From assembly GCF_000006765.1 (NCBI RefSeq), contig NC_002516.2: a stretch of 64,000 nt of DNA. The stretch is one strand, 5' to 3'. This DNA is from Pseudomonas aeruginosa PAO1. Its GTDB lineage: Bacteria; Pseudomonadota; Gammaproteobacteria; Pseudomonadales; Pseudomonadaceae. How positions within the stretch are numbered: the first letter of the stretch is position 1; each line of letters begins with the position of its first letter. Positions 24,917-33,397 of the stretch are shown here, in pieces. The translations under genes and the position numbers were made by a program. The notes under the pieces are model-generated. The model was not told the origin of the DNA and ran no database searches. It saw only the letters and a list, made by a program, of their open reading frames with translations.

Positions 24917-25540
24917 ATGCAGTCACGCCTGATCGATGGCCTGGAATGGGACCTGGACGAGGATGGCAGCGGCGGCCTGTGCAACGTCCATGGCGACAAG
25001 GTCCATCTGCGCCAGGGCGACATGGACGGCGCCTGCGGGCCCTACTGCCTGGTCATGGCGATGCTGGTCCGCGGCCAACTGCGCCGGCGCCAGGCCAAGG
25101 GCCTGGAGCGGGTCGACAGTCGCAGTCGCTACGGGCGCCTGATGAAGGCGCTGGACCAGCACGGCCCGCTGCTGCGCGTCGGCACCACCGGCGTCGACCT
25201 GCTGGAGCTGCTGGCCGAGATCAACGATACCGAGCATTTCGCCCTCAAGGGCGAGGGGCGCAGGTTGGTCCGGCACACCCGCGAATACCTGGAGGCCGGC
25301 TTTCCGGTAGTGCTCGGTTTCCACGGCCGCAAGGGCAGCGATATCCGCCACTGGGGCCTGGCCATCGGCATGAGCGAGCGCGCCTTCCTGCTCCTCGACC
25401 CGGCCCACGACCTGCCGCGCGGGCAGGCCTGGAACGCGGTGATCACCAGCGAGGCGCACGGTTCCCGGTTCGGCTATCGCTATATCAATGCCAAGGGCAC
25501 CTGGGCGGTGACCCTCAAGGAAATGGTCGCCTTGCTTTGA
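24917..25540 (+). CDS. Hypothetical protein, C39-like cysteine peptidase fold
   Basis: 207 aa with GAGGAG SD; Q..D..CG..CL.M, HW.LAIG and LLDP motifs. Confidence 0.7.
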   Translation: MQSRLIDGLEWDLDEDGSGGLCNVHGDKVHLRQGDMDGACGPYCLVMAMLVRGQLRRRQAKGLERVDSRSRYGRLMKALDQHGPLLRVGTTGVDLLELLAEINDTEHFALKGEGRRLVRHTREYLEAGFPVVLGFHGRKGSDIRHWGLAIGMSERAFLLLDPAHDLPRGQAWNAVITSEAHGSRFGYRYINAKGTWAVTLKEMVALL

Positions 25541-25632
25541 GGGGCGGGTTTGTTACAGCCCGTGTGCGGACTGCCAGGCGCGGCGGATCTGCGACTAGAG
25601 TGGTGTTTTTCGCTTGGGGAAGGAGAGAACGC

Positions 25633-26781
25633 ATGCCGGGCCTGTCTTTGAATGCCATCCTGCTGAGCGCCGTCGCGCTGCTCGCTCCGTCGGTCGAGGC
25701 GGTGGACGCCGGTCGCCACGACAGCGAGCTGGGCGCCGTCGAGGTCACCCCGGTGGTTGGTGGTCTGGCCTATCCCTGGGCCGTCGCCTTCCTGCCGGAC
25801 AACCAGGGCATATTGGTCACCGAGCGGCCCGGCAGCTTGCGTTTCGTCAGTCCCGAGGGACAGTTGTCGGCGCCGCTGGAAGGCGTACCCAGGGTCTTCG
25901 CCAGCGGCCAGGGGGGACTGCTCGACGTCGCCTTGTCGCCGGGGTTCGCCGAGGACCGGCTGGTCTACCTGACCTATGCCGAGGCCGGCGAGGACGGCCG
26001 CGCCGGAACGGCGGCGGGACGTGGCCGGTTATCGGCGGACAAGCGACGGCTGGAGGGCTTCCACGTGATCTTCCGGCAGTTGCCGAAGCTTTCCAGCGGC
26101 CATCACTTCGGCTCGCGCCTGGTCTTCGACGGCAAGGGCCACCTGTTCATCGCCCTCGGCGAGAACAACCAGCGCAGCACCTCGCAGGACCTGGACAAGT
26201 TGCAGGGCAAGATCGTCCGCCTGTATCCGGACGGCGGCGTTCCCAAGGACAATCCCTTCGTCGGCCGTGCCGACGCGCGGCCCGAGATCTGGAGCTATGG
26301 CCACCGCAACCAGCAGGGCGCCGCGCTGAATCCCTGGACCGGCCGGCTCTGGACCCACGAGCACGGCCCGCGCGGCGGCGACGAGATCAACATACCCCAG
26401 GCCGGCGGGAACTACGGCTGGCCGCTGGCGACCCATGGAATCAACTACACCCTGCTGCCGATCCCCGAAGCCAGGGGCAAGGCCGTCGAAGGTACCGAGG
26501 CGCCGCACCATGTCTGGGAGAAGTCGCCGGCGATCAGCGGCATGGCGTTCTACGATGCGCAGCGCTTCCCGGCCTGGCAGCATAATTTGTTCATCGGCGC
26601 GCTGGCGACGCAGGAACTGATCCGCCTGCAACTGGATGGCGACCGGATCGTCCACGAAGAGCGCCTGCTGGGCGATCTCGGGGTGCGCATCCGCGACGTG
26701 CGGCAGGGCCCGGACGGCTATCTCTACCTGCTCACCGACCAGAAGGACGGGCAATTGCTGCGCCTGGGGTTGGCGCGCTAG
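25633..26781 (+). CDS. PQQ-dependent aldose sugar dehydrogenase (YliI/GSDH family)
   Basis: 382 aa from ATG 25633; signal peptide; GQGGLLDV, HFGSRL, WSYGHRNQQG, EHGPRGGDEIN. Confidence 0.9.
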   Translation: MPGLSLNAILLSAVALLAPSVEAVDAGRHDSELGAVEVTPVVGGLAYPWAVAFLPDNQGILVTERPGSLRFVSPEGQLSAPLEGVPRVFASGQGGLLDVALSPGFAEDRLVYLTYAEAGEDGRAGTAAGRGRLSADKRRLEGFHVIFRQLPKLSSGHHFGSRLVFDGKGHLFIALGENNQRSTSQDLDKLQGKIVRLYPDGGVPKDNPFVGRADARPEIWSYGHRNQQGAALNPWTGRLWTHEHGPRGGDEINIPQAGGNYGWPLATHGINYTLLPIPEARGKAVEGTEAPHHVWEKSPAISGMAFYDAQRFPAWQHNLFIGALATQELIRLQLDGDRIVHEERLLGDLGVRIRDVRQGPDGYLYLLTDQKDGQLLRLGLAR

Positions 26782-26784
26782 CCT

Positions 26785-27006
26785 TCAGCCTTGGTTGCGC
26801 TTGAGCTGGACGTAGAGCGCCTCGACCTTTTCCCGGGCCCAGGGCGTCTTGCGCAGGAAGGCGAGGCTGGACTTGATGCTCGGGTCGTTCCTGAAACAAC
26901 GAATGTCGACCCGTTTGCCAAGCTCCGCCCAGCCGTGGTGGGCGACCAGTTCGGTGAGCAGTTTTTCCAGGGTGACGCCGTGCAGTGGATCGGGATGGCC
27001 AGGCAT
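26785..27006 (-). CDS. VF530/DUF2132 family small putative DNA-binding protein
   Basis: 73 aa; [13 protein letters not shown]...GW.EL...[24 protein letters not shown] signature. Confidence 0.88.
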
Positions 27007-27106
27007 GAAGGGCTCGGGATTCAGGCAATGAAAAAGGGGATGGAGCGTGGCACATCTGCGTGCCGGCCTGCCATCCCCTTCGTAGTCCCCGGCGAGGGGC
27101 GGGCGA

Positions 27107-27298
27107 TCAGCGCTTCTTGCTGATGGTGATCTGCCGCGACGGGCCGTAGACCTGGCCGCTGACGCCCTTGGCGATCTTCTGGATCTCGCCGCCGGCCTGG
27201 AGGAAGGCGGCGACCTGCGCTTCGATGGACTCGCGGGTTTCGACCGCGGGAGCCGGCTTGGCGGCTTTCGGCGCGACGGTTTTCTTCATGATGGCCAT
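27107..27298 (-). CDS. Small SutA-like protein, 63 aa
   Basis: [21 protein letters not shown] aligns without gaps to the SutA core as I recall it (RDALAKAMEEFLSRGGKVQEI); promoter found just upstream. Confidence 0.75.
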
Positions 27299-27335
27299 AT
27301 CCGGGGACCTGTCTCTGCATTAAATATGGCCGTTC

Positions 27336-27364
27336 ATTATAACCGAAGCGGCGTTTTATTTCAT
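27336..27364 (-). promoter_or_regulatory. sigma70-type promoter for the SutA-like gene
   Basis: Minus strand ATGAAA-N17-TATAAT; predicted start near 27330. Confidence 0.7.
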
Positions 27365-27770
27365 CTTGAATATTGTCGATCAGATTTCGGACGTAACCTG
27401 CTGTTTTCTATAAAGTCCGTTAGGCAATACCCGAGCGAGGCGCTGCGGCATTGGCGATCCGGCGGTGAACTGCTCGAGGTCTCCGCGGCTGGATGTTCCG
27501 CCGACCCCGGGCGACGCAGGATACCGCCAGGTGGATAACTCCCTTCGCGCATCCCGGCATGAATTCCAATGTTTGCATTAGTTGATGCGAGAAAGTTCTC
27601 CGGGCCTCTATCTCACCTATATCGAGAATAATGAAAAGTTCACGATTAGTTATCGGCTAAGTTGCCCGGATATATACGTCGATATCATCGCGCTGCCGGC
27701 CGGGGCATGCATCGCCTCGCTGCGTTCCCGGTGCTAACCTGCGGAACCCCAGCCGCCGAGCGAGCGCCGC

Positions 27771-29537
27771 ATGCCAGCCATTCTCTCCTCCCGCCAACGT
27801 ATCGCCCTGCGCCTGGCCTGGCGCTTCATGGCGCCTTACCGCTGGCGCATGCTCGGGGCCCTGGTGGCGTTGCTGTTCACCGCGGCGATCACCCTGTCCC
27901 TGGGCCAGGGCATCCGCCTGCTGGTGGACCAGGGGTTCCTCACCGCCTCGCCCGAATTGCTCAATCGCTACATCCTGCTGTTCTTCGTGCTGGTGCTCGG
28001 CCTGGCCGTGGGCACCTTCGTGCGCTTCTACCTGGTGTCCTGGATCGGCGAGCGCTTCGTCGCCGATATCCGCAAGCGCGTGTTCGACCACCTGATCGAG
28101 TTGCATCCCGGTTTCTACGAAACCAACCGTAGCTCCGAGATCCAGTCGCGCCTGACCGCCGACACTACGCTGCTGCAGACGGTGATCGGTTCCTCGCTGT
28201 CGATGGCCCTGCGCAATGCCCTGATGCTGGTCGGCGGGGTGCTGCTGATGTTCGTCACCAACGCCAAGCTGACCAGCATCGTGGTGCTGGCGTTGCCGCT
28301 GGTGATCGCCCCGATCCTGCTGTTCGGCCGCCGCGTGCGCAGCCTGTCGCGGGAAAGCCAGGACCGGGTGGCCGACGTCGGCAGCTACGTCGGCGAAACC
28401 CTCGGCCAGATCAAGACCGTGCAGGCCTACAACCACCAGGCGCAGGATCGCCAGCGCTTCGCCGGCACCGTCGAACGCGCCTTCGACACCGCGCGCAAGC
28501 GCATCGCCCAGCGCGCCTGGCTGATCACCGTGGTGATCGTGCTGGTGCTCGGCGCAGTCGGCATCATGCTCTGGGTCGGCGGCCGCGACGTGATCGCCGG
28601 CAGCATCTCGGCCGGCGAACTGGCCGCGTTCGTCTTCTACAGCCTGATCGTCGGCATGGCCTTCGGCACCCTCAGCGAGGTGATCGGCGAATTGCAGCGC
28701 GCTGCCGGCGCCGCAGAGCGCATCGCCGAGCTGCTCAGGGCGCGCAGCGAGATCCGCCCGCCAGCGCAACCACGCAAGCTGGCGGCGCGGGTGAGCGGGA
28801 GGATCGAATTGCAGGCGGTGCGCTTCGCCTATCCGACCCGTCCCGAACACTGGGCCATCGACGACATCAGCCTGGCCGTCGAACCGGGGGAAACCCTGGC
28901 CCTGGTCGGACCTTCCGGTGCCGGCAAGTCGACCCTGTTCGATCTGCTCCTGCGTTTCTTCGATCCGCAGCAGGGACGGCTGCTGCTGGACGGACAGCCG
29001 ATCGTCGAACTGGACCCGGCCGACTTGCGCCGCAGCTTTGCCCTGGTGTCGCAGAACCCCGCGCTGTTCTTCGGCAGCGTCGAGGAAAACATCCGCTACG
29101 GCCGTCCGCATGCCAGCGCCGCCGAGGTCGAGGCCGCAGCGCGTGCCGCGCATGCCCACGAGTTCATCCTGGGTCTGCCGCAGGGCTACGCCACCCACCT
29201 GGGCGAGGGCGGCATCGGCCTGTCCGGCGGCCAGCGCCAGCGCCTGGCGATCGCCCGGGCGTTGCTGGTAGACGCGCCGGTGCTGCTGCTCGACGAGGCG
29301 ACCAGCGCCCTGGATGCGGAAAGCGAGCACCTGATCCAGCAGGCCCTGCCAGGCCTGATGAGCGGACGTACCACCCTGGTGATCGCCCATCGCCTGGCCA
29401 CGGTACAGAGCGCCGACCGCATCGCGGTGATCGACCAGGGGCGGCTGGTGGCCATTGGTAGCCATGCCCGGCTGATCGCCGAGAACCCGCTCTATGCGCG
29501 CCTGGCGGAACTGCAGTTCGCTGCCGGCGGACGCTAG
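27771..29537 (+). CDS. ABC exporter, fused TMD-NBD (MsbA-like)
   Basis: 588 aa; GPSGAGKST, LSGGQRQR, LLLDEATSALD. Confidence 0.95.
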   Translation: MPAILSSRQRIALRLAWRFMAPYRWRMLGALVALLFTAAITLSLGQGIRLLVDQGFLTASPELLNRYILLFFVLVLGLAVGTFVRFYLVSWIGERFVADIRKRVFDHLIELHPGFYETNRSSEIQSRLTADTTLLQTVIGSSLSMALRNALMLVGGVLLMFVTNAKLTSIVVLALPLVIAPILLFGRRVRSLSRESQDRVADVGSYVGETLGQIKTVQAYNHQAQDRQRFAGTVERAFDTARKRIAQRAWLITVVIVLVLGAVGIMLWVGGRDVIAGSISAGELAAFVFYSLIVGMAFGTLSEVIGELQRAAGAAERIAELLRARSEIRPPAQPRKLAARVSGRIELQAVRFAYPTRPEHWAIDDISLAVEPGETLALVGPSGAGKSTLFDLLLRFFDPQQGRLLLDGQPIVELDPADLRRSFALVSQNPALFFGSVEENIRYGRPHASAAEVEAAARAAHAHEFILGLPQGYATHLGEGGIGLSGGQRQRLAIARALLVDAPVLLLDEATSALDAESEHLIQQALPGLMSGRTTLVIAHRLATVQSADRIAVIDQGRLVAIGSHARLIAENPLYARLAELQFAAGGR

Positions 29538-29539
29538 CT

Positions 29540-29875
29540 TCAGAGCGGCTTGTCGATGCCCGCGTACTGCTTGTCCAGCTCGTCGATACGCTGCGCGTAG
29601 GCGCGGGAGAGGCAGTCGGTGTCGCCACCGCAGCGCCGGCGCTCGCGCAGCCAGTCCTGCTGCCGGTCCTGCATGGCGCCGCGGCCGCCCATGGCGAACA
29701 GGCCGCGGAGGAAGCGGTACTTGACGCTCATCTCGACGTCCTTGTCGTTCAGCGCCCGGTTCGCGCAGATGGCCTTTTCGTCCGCTCGCTCAGCCTTTTC
29801 GCAATCGAAGCTGGCCGCTTCGGCCAGGGGCGCCAGCAGGAGTCCGCCGAGGGCGAGGAATGCCAGGTGCTTCAT
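29540..29875 (-). CDS. LprI-family lysozyme-inhibitor-like secreted protein
   Basis: Signal peptide followed by ASFDCEKA...AIC and QQDWLRERRRCGGDTDCL...Y..RI. Confidence 0.82.
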   Translation of the reverse strand: MKHLAFLALGGLLLAPLAEAASFDCEKAERADEKAICANRALNDKDVEMSVKYRFLRGLFAMGGRGAMQDRQQDWLRERRRCGGDTDCLSRAYAQRIDELDKQYAGIDKPL

Positions 29876-29978
29876 GCCGTTCTCCGTTTCGCCTGGTTGC
29901 TTGCGAATCTTCGACGCCCGCGACGGCGCTGGGTTCAGCGGGGAGCGCGCGGCGGCCGGGCGGGCCGCTCCGGCGCGG

Positions 29979-32303
29979 TCAGTGCGAAAGGATCAGGGCC
30001 TTCTGCTCGGGGATGACGGTGCGCTCCCGAGGGGCGTCCGCGCGTTCCGCTTCCTCGGTTTCGGGGCGGTTGGCGAACAGGCTTTTCAGGGTGCTCAGCA
30101 GCGGCTGTTCCTTCGCCGCTTCGGCGACCTGGCTGCGGCTTTCCACGGGTTCCGGGTTGGCCGCCGTGACCACGTGGAAGTCGCTGATCTCGATGATCCC
30201 GCGGCCCTCGGCGAGCAAGTGGAAGGAGAAGGCCTTGCGCGCTTCCGGGTTGTCGAAGGTGAAGCTCATGTCCAGCGGCTTGCCTTTGAGCAGGCGCGGG
30301 ATGTCCGGTACCGGTATGGGAACGTCGCGTTCGAACTCCTTGGTCTTCAGCGTCACCCGGGCGCCGTTGCGGTCCATCTGCAAGGCGCGGATCTTCAGGG
30401 TGACCGTGGTCCTGCTGTTCTTCGGCATCTCCAGGTATTGCGCGCCGATCAGGTTGTCGGTCCAGTCGTTGTGGGTTTCCGGCTTCAGGCGGATGCGTTC
30501 GTGGGTGGCGAACTGGAACTCCTGGCCCAACTGGCCGGCCTGTTGCACGGAGTGGTCGAGGACGGCGGCGCGCTGGCTGACCAGGCGTGCCTGGCGACCG
30601 CTGAAGCGACCGAGGAACTCGGCTTCGTCGGCGATGAAGCCCTCGCTGCGGTAGCGCCGGCAGACCTGCTGGAAATCGCATTCGACGAAGGTGTCCTTGC
30701 CGTCGTGGTGACGCAGCATGCCGTTGGTGTAGGACATCATTTCGCGGCCGCTGGCGTAGTCGCGGAACAGCGAGCGCCCGGAAATCCCCGCCGGCACGCG
30801 GTAGCCGAAATAGTCGAGGACGGACGCGGCGAGGTCGACGTGGCCGTAGACGCCGCTCTTGATCGGCGGCAGCGCCGCCTGTTCCGGTGCCAGTACCAGG
30901 TTGAAGCCCCAGGCCGAGGCGAGGCGCACCTGGTCGACACCGTGGGATTCGTCGGAAGTGAGCACCACCAGGGTGTCGCGCAACACGCCCTGTTTCTCCA
31001 GGTCGGCGAGGAAGGCGTCGATCGCGTCGTCGAGATAGGCCACCGCGGCCTGCTTGGCGCTCGGGTAGCGGGCCAGGTAGTCGGCAGGCGCCGAGTAGGG
31101 CTGGTGGGTGCCGACGGTGAGCAGGGTCAGCATCCAGGGTTTCTTCTGCTGGCGCAGCTGCTTCACGTAGGTCGCGGCGCCCTCGAAGAAGGCCTTGTCG
31201 TCCATGCCCCAGGGAAACTCCAGGTAGGACGTGTTGCGGAACCAGTCGCGCCCGAGGGTCTTGTCGAAGCCCATCTGCGGCATGACCTTGTCCTTGGCCA
31301 TGAAGCGCAGGCCGGCACCCTGCAGGAAGTGCGTGCTGAAACCGTGCTGGCGCAGCTGGGCGGGCAAGCACTCCCTGGCCCGGGCCGGGTTGTTCAGCAG
31401 CTCGACGCCCTTCGGCGTGCCCGAGTCGAGCTTGCTGTAGTCGCCGCAGAGCATGGCGTAGAGGCCGCGGATGGTCTGGTGGCTGTGCAGCACGTAGTCC
31501 GGGGTGGTCATCGCCCGTTCGGCCCAGCCACTCAGCCTGGGCATCGGCGCTTCGTGGTAGCTGCTGTTGATGGCGGCGCGGTTGGCGGCGATATACGCGC
31601 CGGGGATTCCCTCCATGGCCACGATCAGGACGTTGCGCGCGCGCCCTCCGCCGGCCAGCAGCGGCGTTCCGGAAAGGTCGAGCTGGTTGAGCCCGGCGAC
31701 GTCCGGCGGGGTGTCCGGACGGTCGTCGGCGAGCCAGTCTTCGACCGCCAGTTGGCCACTGCTGAGCGCGCTGGCCAGCAGCTTGTGCGGCAGGTTGTAC
31801 TGCTGCCATTGGTCGGCATCGCTCGGACGCAGGTATTGCAGGCCGACATGCGCCGCCAGGAACGCCGCCGGCAGCGCGTAGGCATAGCGCGGCAGGCGCG
31901 GACCGCGGCGACGCCAGAGCAGCACGCAAAGCAATGTCGCGCCACCGAGGCCGAGCGCCAGTGGCAGGTGGGCGAGGCCGCCGCCCTGGGTGGAGCTGCT
32001 GACGAACTGCGGATCCAGCAGGTACTTGAGGTCGGAAGGTTCCGGCATGCGCCCGACCGCTGCGACCAGTTCGGCATTGCCGATCAGGAACAGGCACCAG
32101 AGCAGCATGACCGGGAGCGCGAACCACAGGGAGCGTCGATGCAGGAGCAGCACCAGCAGGCTGCCGAGGGCCAGGTCCGAGAGATAGCCGAACGGCGTCG
32201 ACCAGCCGAGCCAGTAGCGGCCGGCGAGGGGAACGACCAGGAACAGCGCGGCCAGCGCCAGAAGCGAGCCGCAAGATGAGAGCCAACGGCTGAGTGGACG
32301 CAC
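29979..32303 (-). CDS. Membrane-anchored LtaS/sulfatase (alkaline phosphatase superfamily) protein
   Basis: 774 aa, GTG start after AGGAG; about 5 N-terminal TM helices; MEG, QT, GTHQPY and SDESHG metal/nucleophile motifs. Confidence 0.85.
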   Translation of the reverse strand: MRPLSRWLSSCGSLLALAALFLVVPLAGRYWLGWSTPFGYLSDLALGSLLVLLLHRRSLWFALPVMLLWCLFLIGNAELVAAVGRMPEPSDLKYLLDPQFVSSSTQGGGLAHLPLALGLGGATLLCVLLWRRRGPRLPRYAYALPAAFLAAHVGLQYLRPSDADQWQQYNLPHKLLASALSSGQLAVEDWLADDRPDTPPDVAGLNQLDLSGTPLLAGGGRARNVLIVAMEGIPGAYIAANRAAINSSYHEAPMPRLSGWAERAMTTPDYVLHSHQTIRGLYAMLCGDYSKLDSGTPKGVELLNNPARARECLPAQLRQHGFSTHFLQGAGLRFMAKDKVMPQMGFDKTLGRDWFRNTSYLEFPWGMDDKAFFEGAATYVKQLRQQKKPWMLTLLTVGTHQPYSAPADYLARYPSAKQAAVAYLDDAIDAFLADLEKQGVLRDTLVVLTSDESHGVDQVRLASAWGFNLVLAPEQAALPPIKSGVYGHVDLAASVLDYFGYRVPAGISGRSLFRDYASGREMMSYTNGMLRHHDGKDTFVECDFQQVCRRYRSEGFIADEAEFLGRFSGRQARLVSQRAAVLDHSVQQAGQLGQEFQFATHERIRLKPETHNDWTDNLIGAQYLEMPKNSRTTVTLKIRALQMDRNGARVTLKTKEFERDVPIPVPDIPRLLKGKPLDMSFTFDNPEARKAFSFHLLAEGRGIIEISDFHVVTAANPEPVESRSQVAEAAKEQPLLSTLKSLFANRPETEEAERADAPRERTVIPEQKALILSH

Positions 32304-32557: not shown

Positions 32558-33397
32558 ATGGCGGTCATCGGGCGTTTCAATTCACTGCAGGTGGTCAAGC
32601 ACACGGAGTTCGGGCTCTATCTCGACGGTACCCAGCACGGCGAGATCCTCCTGCCCAAGCGCTATGTGCCGAAGGACCAGCCCAGCGAAGTGGGCGACTG
32701 GCTCAACGTGTTCATCTACCTGGACAGCGACGACCGCCTGATCGCCACCACTCAGACGCCCAAGGTCCAGGTCGGCGGTTTCGCCAGCCTGAAGGTCGTG
32801 GAGATCAACCGGATCGGCCTGTTCCTCGACTGGGGCCTGCCCAAGGACCTGCTGCTGCCGCATTCGGAAGAAAAGCGTCCGTTGCAGGTCGGCGACTACT
32901 GCGTGGTCTACGTCTACCTGGACAAGCGCACCAACCGCATCACCGCCACCGCACGCCTGGACCGCCAGTTGGACAACCTGCCGCCACGCTACAGCGTCGG
33001 CCAGGCGGTCGACCTGCTGGTGGTGGAGCGTACCGAGATGGGCTTCAAGGCGATCATCGAGGGCAAGCACTGGGGCCTGATCCACAAGAACGAGGCGTTC
33101 AAGTTCCTCCGCAGCGGCATGCGCGAACAGGGCTACATCAAGGAATTGCGCGCGGACGGCAAGATCGCCCTTAGCCTGCAGCCGGTCGGCGCCGAGGCCG
33201 CCGTCGAGCTGAGCCAGCAGATTCTCGCCCGGCTGCTGGAGGCCGGCGGCAGCCTGCCGCTCAGCGACAAGAGTTCGCCGGAAGATATCCACCGGCTCTT
33301 CGGGGTCAGCAAGGGGACCTTCAAGAAGGCCATCGGCGGCCTCTACAAGAAAGGCCTGATCCTGATCCATCCGGAACGCATCGAACTGCCGCGCTGA
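32558..33397 (+). CDS. cvfB: CvfB-family S1 RNA-binding protein
   Basis: 279 aa; GLFLDWGLPKDLL, SKGTFKKAIGGLYKK. Confidence 0.88.
   Translation: MAVIGRFNSLQVVKHTEFGLYLDGTQHGEILLPKRYVPKDQPSEVGDWLNVFIYLDSDDRLIATTQTPKVQVGGFASLKVVEINRIGLFLDWGLPKDLLLPHSEEKRPLQVGDYCVVYVYLDKRTNRITATARLDRQLDNLPPRYSVGQAVDLLVVERTEMGFKAIIEGKHWGLIHKNEAFKFLRSGMREQGYIKELRADGKIALSLQPVGAEAAVELSQQILARLLEAGGSLPLSDKSSPEDIHRLFGVSKGTFKKAIGGLYKKGLILIHPERIELPR

Follow-up and report, generated by a model that had tools for sequence, protein, structure and literature searches.

The Pseudomonas aeruginosa 'sRNA' PA1112.1 as the predicted mRNA of a small basic protein with a SutA-type RNA polymerase-binding domain

The transcript catalogued as the non-coding RNA PA1112.1 of Pseudomonas aeruginosa PAO1 appears, judged by comparative sequence analysis, to be the mRNA of a conserved 63-residue protein with a SutA-type RNA polymerase (RNAP)-binding domain (SutA-RBD). 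The gene lies in a 64,000-nt stretch of contig NC_002516.2, hereafter called the window. Its product is a member of the PFL_1563 family (NF058628), whose name carries no function. This family is already named in NCBIfam and is labelled through Pfam in UniProt, and the existence of the gene was already known; the new elements are the connection with the 'sRNA' and a mechanistic prediction. In the literature we found no functional study of the PFL_1563 family, no report of a P. aeruginosa SutA paralogue and no link to PA1112.1.

The 300-nt transcript and its reading frame

The ORF occupies 27107..27298 on the minus strand, stop codon included, and encodes a 63-aa protein. The first-pass annotation had placed a SutA-like small protein with its own promoter in the interval 27107-27364 and had left the strand unstated. 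The interval does hold the feature, and the strand is corrected here to minus. The features of the locus are as follows:

27359..27364, minus strand: weak -35-like hexamer (ATGAAA), with a 17-nt spacer to the -10 hexamer; poorly conserved in orthologous loci
27336..27341, minus strand: perfect -10 hexamer (TATAAT), from the promoter scan
about 27327..27330, minus strand: predicted transcription start, placed from the -10 hexamer
27299..27330, minus strand: 5' UTR, about 31 nt long; GGCC is conserved at the 5' end
27310..27307, minus strand: Shine-Dalgarno (SD)-like AGGT, 8 nt before the first ATG
27107..27298, minus strand: coding sequence for 63 aa, stop codon included, identified by its ORF, Pfam and NCBIfam matches and a selection signature
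27289, minus strand: alternative start (M4), which would give 60 aa
27248..27298, minus strand: basic Lys/Ala/Pro-rich N-tail, residues 1-17, from the charge count
27152..27247, minus strand: SutA-RBD domain, residues 18-49, from the Pfam match
27197..27235, minus strand: predicted helix, residues 22-34 (AlphaFold2), followed by GGEIQKI, the counterpart of SutA strand 81-84
27110..27151, minus strand: C-tail, residues 50-63, with the family motif [KR][HQ]I[TS][LI]xKK (family alignments)
27031..27079, minus strand: intrinsic terminator, a long GC-rich hairpin (27079..27036) and then UUUUU (27035..27031), from the minimum free energy (MFE) structure

The promoter is the sole sigma-70-like site in 26700..27800, where 0.3 sites are expected in shuffled sequences. 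Its -10 hexamer agrees with the perfect TATAAT and the start near 27330 that had been proposed earlier, and the hairpin before the T-run of the terminator has a dG of -26 kcal/mol. With the start taken near 27329, the span from promoter to terminator is about 299 nt. We conclude that the locus is very probably a monocistronic mRNA of ~300 nt, with a leader of 31 nt and an ORF of 63 codons between its own sigma-70-type promoter and an intrinsic terminator.

Only the -10 part of the promoter is conserved among orthologous loci. Most of them carry a -10-like hexamer (TACAAT, TACGAT or CATAAT) 31-37 nt 5' of the start codon, and a scan with the generic sigma-70 consensus reached 9/12 matches in only 6/78 orthologous upstream regions. 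A crude terminator scan found a strong hairpin followed by a T-run in only 3/78 loci; thus, the terminator is specific to the P. aeruginosa group. In the upstream regions of the fluorescens group (L020-L080), a conserved box, AATTGTCAAG, lies 11 nt 5' of the -10 hexamer. It may serve as an operator, conceivably one for a LysR regulator like BsrA. The conserved TTGTCAAG box of the same group was considered as a -35 element and ruled out, as its position is that of the spacer.

M1 and M4 are both candidate starts. In P. aeruginosa, codons 1 and 4 are each ATG; of the two, the mendocina group keeps just the first (MATLRVK) and other species just the second (MRVK). Both starts are used in the source annotations, which give proteins of 63 aa (P0001) and 60 aa (P0002). 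The 8-nt spacing of AGGT in P. aeruginosa favours M1; the spacing of the SD-like element is variable among orthologues.

The layout of the window identifies the locus with a previously detected RNA. In intergenic region 645 of PAO1, Gonzalez et al. (2008; PMC2375449) detected an RNA of 300 nt on Northern blots. This region has 989 bp and is flanked by genes of 1149 and 1767 bp that both run in the '>' direction. The RNA ran antisense in direction to these genes and was present in both exponential and stationary phase (PMC2375449). In the window, a GSDH-family gene of 1149 bp (25633..26781) and an ABC transporter gene of 1767 bp (27771..29537) enclose a gap of 989 bp (26782..27770). Because all three lengths match exactly, we identify the small gene with the region-645 RNA locus, PA1112.1. 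The predicted transcript of ~299 nt agrees with the 300-nt Northern band (PMC2375449), and the earlier mention of a roughly 300-nt 'sRNA' of this name over the interval was correct.

The 989-bp 'intergenic region' of the 2008 study also contains a gene for a VF530-family DNA-binding protein of 73 aa (PF09905, 116 bits; 26785..27006, minus strand), which went unrecognised at the time. The gene begins 25 nt beyond the terminator, and its far end is 3 nt short of the convergent GSDH gene. This neighbour was considered as a functional partner of the small protein and rejected, since it is at this site only in P. aeruginosa and P. paraeruginosa.

The small ORF is very probably protein-coding, by the comparative evidence. 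Pairwise dN/dS over 72 distinct core coding sequences has a median of 0.14 and a maximum of 0.45, indicating purifying selection on the frame. Variable sites number 22, 14 and 43 at codon positions 1, 2 and 3, respectively (44 codons). With third positions varying at 43 of the 44 codons, there is little RNA-level constraint. The GC3 of the frame is 0.91, and that of neighbouring genes is 0.80-0.90. Related loci were found in species-representative genomes (at least 528); the best 80, almost exclusively from Pseudomonas sensu lato, have the ORF intact without exception. A trans-acting non-coding sRNA should have no conserved, selected ORF, so neither this nor the dN/dS value fits such a class, and both bear out the earlier suggestion that the transcript is probably an mRNA.

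Searches for conserved RNA features were negative. No relevant Rfam family was found on 25000..30000, and RNAalifold returned no consensus pairs in 16 orthologous leaders. The latter result also ruled out a pairing of the 5' end with the start codon (GGCCAU...AUGGCC). When the 300-nt transcript is folded to its MFE structure, GGUCCCCGG next to the SD element (27301..27309, minus strand) pairs with CCGGGGACU in the 3' UTR (27080..27088, minus strand), which could be chance or a translational control element. A CCCCGG stretch in the leader is a P. aeruginosa-specific insertion.

PA1112.1 has nevertheless been handled as RNA in the literature. The 2021 mSystems paper on BsrA termed it a non-coding sRNA without an assigned function (PMC8407307), and a 2026 paper still lists it as a non-coding RNA. 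Its promoter region is the strongest BsrA peak in ChIP-seq, and in vitro binding of BsrA to the promoter requires a T-N11-A box (PMC8407307). A PA1112.1 promoter fragment is active in E. coli, and BsrA represses it (PMC8407307 and its preprint). This LysR-type repressor is the only regulator on record for PA1112.1 (PMC8407307). PA1112.1 is absent from the Grad-seq supplement, and this analysis found no specific tie of the small gene to dormancy.

Relationship to SutA and the PFL_1563 family

The SutA similarity of the small protein is far beyond chance by profile statistics. Residues 18-49 match profile positions 3-34 of the 35 in Pfam PF20661 (SutA-RBD) with 57.8 bits (E 6.6e-16; gathering cut-off 29.3 bits). 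Authentic SutA, represented by chain G of PDB 7F0R, scores 48.7 bits on the same profile, below the small protein. In a profile-profile comparison of 44 short-family with 20 SutA proteins (hhalign; 92.2% probability, E 5.9e-7), residues 23-49 align with SutA 65-91 without gaps, at an offset of 42. The first-pass annotation had aligned the core to the SutA helix, also without gaps, and had proposed an HMM search with the SutA domain; the register is the same, and the PF20661 match answers the search. The core, the basic Ala/Pro-rich N-tail and the KKR end that it had read are all exact in the 63-aa translation.

Pairwise searches gave no such signal. BLASTP against SutA and phmmer against the PDB found no SutA similarity for the small protein, and a PDB search with the short-family profile also missed SutA. 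The likeness is therefore one that, at the level of sequence, appears detectable by profiles only, and the homologous stretch that it covers is about 27-32 residues.

Equivalog models separate the two proteins. The small protein scores 92.1 bits on NCBIfam NF058628, 'PFL_1563 family small protein' (positions 1-51 of 51; equivalog cut-off 60 bits), on which SutA fails with only 18.3 bits. On the SutA equivalog NF041490 (cut-off 145 bits), SutA scores 166.2 bits and the small protein has no hit at E<=1. Both proteins are encoded in the same genomes, examples being LS44, AOB-7, SH1-B, P. xionganensis, P. dryadis and E. mendocina, and we infer from this that they are paralogues with separate roles.

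With SutA (PA14_69770; NF041490; PDB 7F0R, 7XL3, 7XL4) the small protein shares the PF20661 domain, in which an amphipathic helix leads through a GG turn into a short strand. AlphaFold2 predicts one helix (residues 22-34, pLDDT about 85) and coil for the remainder, so that the modelled architecture, one helix between flexible tails, is as in SutA. The SutA RNAP-binding domain comprises residues 57-90 (He et al. 2022, PMC9300723). Ten of its residues are each needed for binding to the beta protrusion, namely K60, R64, L67, M71, F74, L75, G78, G79, V81 and I84 (PMC9300723). Their counterparts in the small protein are, in the same order, A18, R22, I25, V29, F32, L33, G36, G37, I39 and I42. Nine of the ten are kept or conservatively replaced, the exception being K60, which is replaced by A18.

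Among 44 family members, F32, G36 and G37 never vary and L33 hardly does; positions 25, 39 and 42 (SutA L67, V81 and I84) are always aliphatic. Position 29 (SutA M71) is most often Thr (19/44) and otherwise V, I or M. Position 22 (SutA R64) is S or R, Ser accounting for about half of the members, and A predominates at position 18.

Outside the core the two proteins differ. The small protein is without the acidic N-terminal domain of SutA, the long Asp/Glu-rich segment that characterises NF041490 proteins being absent, and it is without the ELPS(V/I)EAK wedge-loop motif. The N-tail has a median net charge of +4 (range 0 to +5) in the 44 family members and about -20 in SutA, so the acidic SutA tail is indeed replaced by a basic one, as had been read from the sequence earlier. 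Its median length is about 16 residues in the family (17 in the PAO1 protein) and about 57 in SutA, and the pI of the whole protein is 10.3 for the small protein and 4.1 for SutA.

The family has motifs that are absent from SutA: a Lys cluster and PxPAVET (KPxPAVET) ahead of the helix, GVSGQ after the strand, and the end [KR][HQ]ITLGKK. The C-tail reads GVSGQ...QITISKK in the small protein and NVVADPPKKPDSKYGSRPI in SutA, and the invariant SutA C-tail DPPKKPDSKYGSRPI is not found in the small protein when the SutA and short-family alignments are compared. The YGPSRQI of its C-tail resembles the SutA C-terminus YGSRPI (loosely, YGxSRxI); hhalign does not align them. Because the family has its own conserved motifs, the protein may do more than, or something other than, occupy a site. 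The ubiquity and conservation of the basic tail likewise argue, at the sequence level, more for an active role than for competition of a passive kind.

In 1.8 billion cluster representatives, the profile search returned 329 hits at E<=1e-3. Of the best-scoring 150, almost all are proteins of 55-70 aa with basic N-tails; unrelated repeat proteins and mis-called or chimeric ORFs are also among them, so that the true family clusters must number fewer than 329. Outside Pseudomonas, the named members are from Marinomonas and the Cellvibrionaceae, and a search for phage homologues found none. Distant members mostly pass NF058628, with one borderline at 59.1 bits. Four metagenomic proteins (P0094, P0188, P0166 and P0174) have long histone-H1-like Lys/Ala/Pro N-extensions, with net charges of +9 to +20, on the same SutA-RBD-like core.

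Two giant proteins, P0107 (1534 aa) and P0148 (903 aa), match the short-family profile 8-9 times. P0107 was rejected as a family member: it carries unrelated 34-residue helical repeats containing AQFVLAAFLNNGGK (AAFLNNGG), and the likeness is probably convergent. These matches are a caution against matching by motif only. A metagenome-assembled contig labelled 'uncultured Caulobacter sp.' (L002) carries the locus at 98-100% identity to P. aeruginosa, together with the VF530 and GSDH genes, and is probably a binning contaminant.

In 76 of the 80 loci, the small gene is divergently paired, at a distance of 240-340 bp, with a CvfB-family gene whose product has two S1_2 domains and a CvfB winged helix. 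The CvfB-family gene of the window (32558..33397, plus strand) lies about 5.2 kb off, beyond the ABC transporter gene and a large ORF. An ancestral pair of small gene and cvfB was probably split by an insertion in P. aeruginosa, as the gene order suggests. In Marinomonas (L084, 2576..4183), the small gene is 128 nt 3' of a pair encoding an ECF sigma factor and a ChrR-like anti-sigma factor, and in marine Tara contigs (L081-L083, 1512..7936) it lies between rubrerythrin/DUF3501 and AhpC/AhpF-like genes. These arrangements hint, if weakly, that the gene of distant members lies in an oxidative-stress neighbourhood.

Possible action on RNA polymerase

What is known of SutA suggests how the small protein may act. 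SutA is anchored in a hydrophobic groove of the beta protrusion (beta1) (PMC9300723); the first-pass annotation had named the beta lobe as its contact, which was a mistake. [quoted passage not shown] SutA without its N-tail inhibits transcription dose-dependently in vitro, and the authors of that study noted that some homologues are without the N-tail (Bergkessel et al., 10.1101/423384). Engineered N-tail-less SutA is the closest functional analogue of the small protein, consisting of the RNAP-binding domain and C-tail and no acidic activating tail. It is an artificial truncation, however, whereas the natural protein has a conserved basic tail and motifs of its own, and its effect may differ.

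On these grounds the small protein probably binds RNAP at the SutA site. Its helix and strand would dock in the hydrophobic groove of the beta protrusion, as those of SutA do. Without the ~55-residue acidic N-domain of SutA, it would not activate transcription in the manner of SutA. Occupation of the site would exclude SutA, damp initiation, or both, as N-tail-less SutA does in vitro. Since the protein combines an RNAP-binding domain with a basic tail, and N-tail-less SutA inhibits, a competitor or damper is the simplest prediction. This accords with the earlier suggestion of a second RNAP modulator that could compete with or oppose SutA during dormancy; the inhibition seen with N-tail-less SutA lends plausibility to the competing or opposing part. 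By this analogy, a competitive or inhibitory net effect on transcription is somewhat favoured. The complete reading, docking at the SutA site followed by competition or damping, is in our judgement the best explanation overall, at roughly even chances.

A bolder version makes the PFL_1563 proteins a widespread sister class of SutA with inverted charge, which would dock in the same groove and place a basic tail at the beta1/beta2 gap. The two would then form a matched opposing pair in pseudomonads, with PA1112.1 as the mRNA of the antagonist. We put this forward tentatively, as a reading with rather less than an even chance.

The main rival keeps the docking site and reverses the logic: the basic tail would touch either an acidic element of sigma or nucleic acid, be it fork DNA or the non-template strand close to the beta1/beta2 gap, and the protein would stabilise or re-tune open complexes in a promoter-specific manner, independently of SutA. 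Such a factor would be closer to CarD and RbpA than to an anti-SutA. CarD and RbpA are small factors anchored at or close to the beta protrusion (beta1) or sigma, with basic segments that reach promoter DNA; the likeness is an analogy only, with no relationship in sequence or fold, and these factors belong to other phyla. Almost every member has a basic N-tail, in which a Lys cluster 6-10 residues ahead of the helix is conserved, and some distant members, one of which weakly matches an H1-like DNA-binding family, have H1-like K/A/P tails with charges of +13 to +20 that would suit contact with nucleic acid. The many clusters at 50% identity and the family's own conserved motifs point to an autonomous function. 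In addition, the N-terminal end of the SutA helix faces the protrusion/lobe gap that leads to the cleft (PMC9300723). The same structural work argues on the other side, because the main cleft is positively charged before DNA is loaded and would repel a basic tail (PMC9300723), and in Pseudomonas the tail is only about 13-19 residues long. We regard this alternative as unlikely, though by a smaller measure than those that follow. A SutA-RBD-like helix re-used for another partner (the ribosome, nucleoid DNA or a CvfB-type S1 RNA-binding protein), in a protein that is no RNAP factor, would fit the confinement of the SutA homology to about 30 residues, two polar SutA contacts that are not conserved family-wide, and the invariant motifs GVSGQ and ET(S), which SutA does not have. 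The same short motif also matches unrelated repeat proteins, and the divergent pairing with the cvfB-family gene could point to such a partner; divergent gene pairing is, however, weak evidence of physical partnership. Against a change of partner, all six hydrophobic and both glycine positions of the interface are retained, four of them invariant (L33 nearly so), and the PF20661 score exceeds that of authentic SutA. Moreover, the range of the family (Pseudomonas, Marinomonas, Cellvibrionaceae) appears to overlap the orders reported for SutA (Pseudomonadales, Alteromonadales). We consider another partner improbable.

Less probable still, and in our view very improbable, is action of PA1112.1 as a regulatory RNA, whether purely non-coding or as a dual-function RNA with base-pairing beside the ORF. 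The annotation as ncRNA and the treatment as an sRNA in the 2008, 2021 and 2026 papers speak for it, as does an RNA level high enough to be seen on a Northern blot; the MFE fold is a little more stable than those of shuffled sequences (z -2.24), and the possible pairing of the SD region with the 3' UTR could be of use to such an RNA. The sRNA label, however, rests only on size and intergenic position, with no target or Hfq dependence reported in these papers. The ORF takes up 192 of the about 299 nt and bears a protein-level signature of selection, and the transcript has neither an Rfam match nor a conserved 5' structure. SgrS/SgrT and PhrS are likewise transcripts that were catalogued first as sRNA and later found to have a conserved ORF; in contrast to these, PA1112.1 probably does not combine two functions and is an mRNA only.

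Regulation appears to differ between the two paralogues: the small gene is repressed by BsrA, and SutA expression has been studied with mutants in regulators of the flagellar cascade, starvation (RpoS, Lrp) and quorum sensing.

The results correct the annotation of PA1112.1, which regulon and transcriptome papers of 2021 and even 2026 still handled as a non-coding RNA. For the BsrA regulon, the conclusion that BsrA 'controls an sRNA' probably becomes that it controls a putative RNAP-binding protein. Within its domain family SutA alone has been characterised, and it serves as a model for transcription during slow growth; its small paralogue is a candidate competitor at the same site and a ready-made test of the model in which an acidic tail wedges the lobe. 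If the PFL_1563 proteins do oppose SutA, a metabolic LysR regulator, BsrA, would be linked directly to the tuning of RNAP, and this could help to explain why the effect of SutA is confined to certain growth states.
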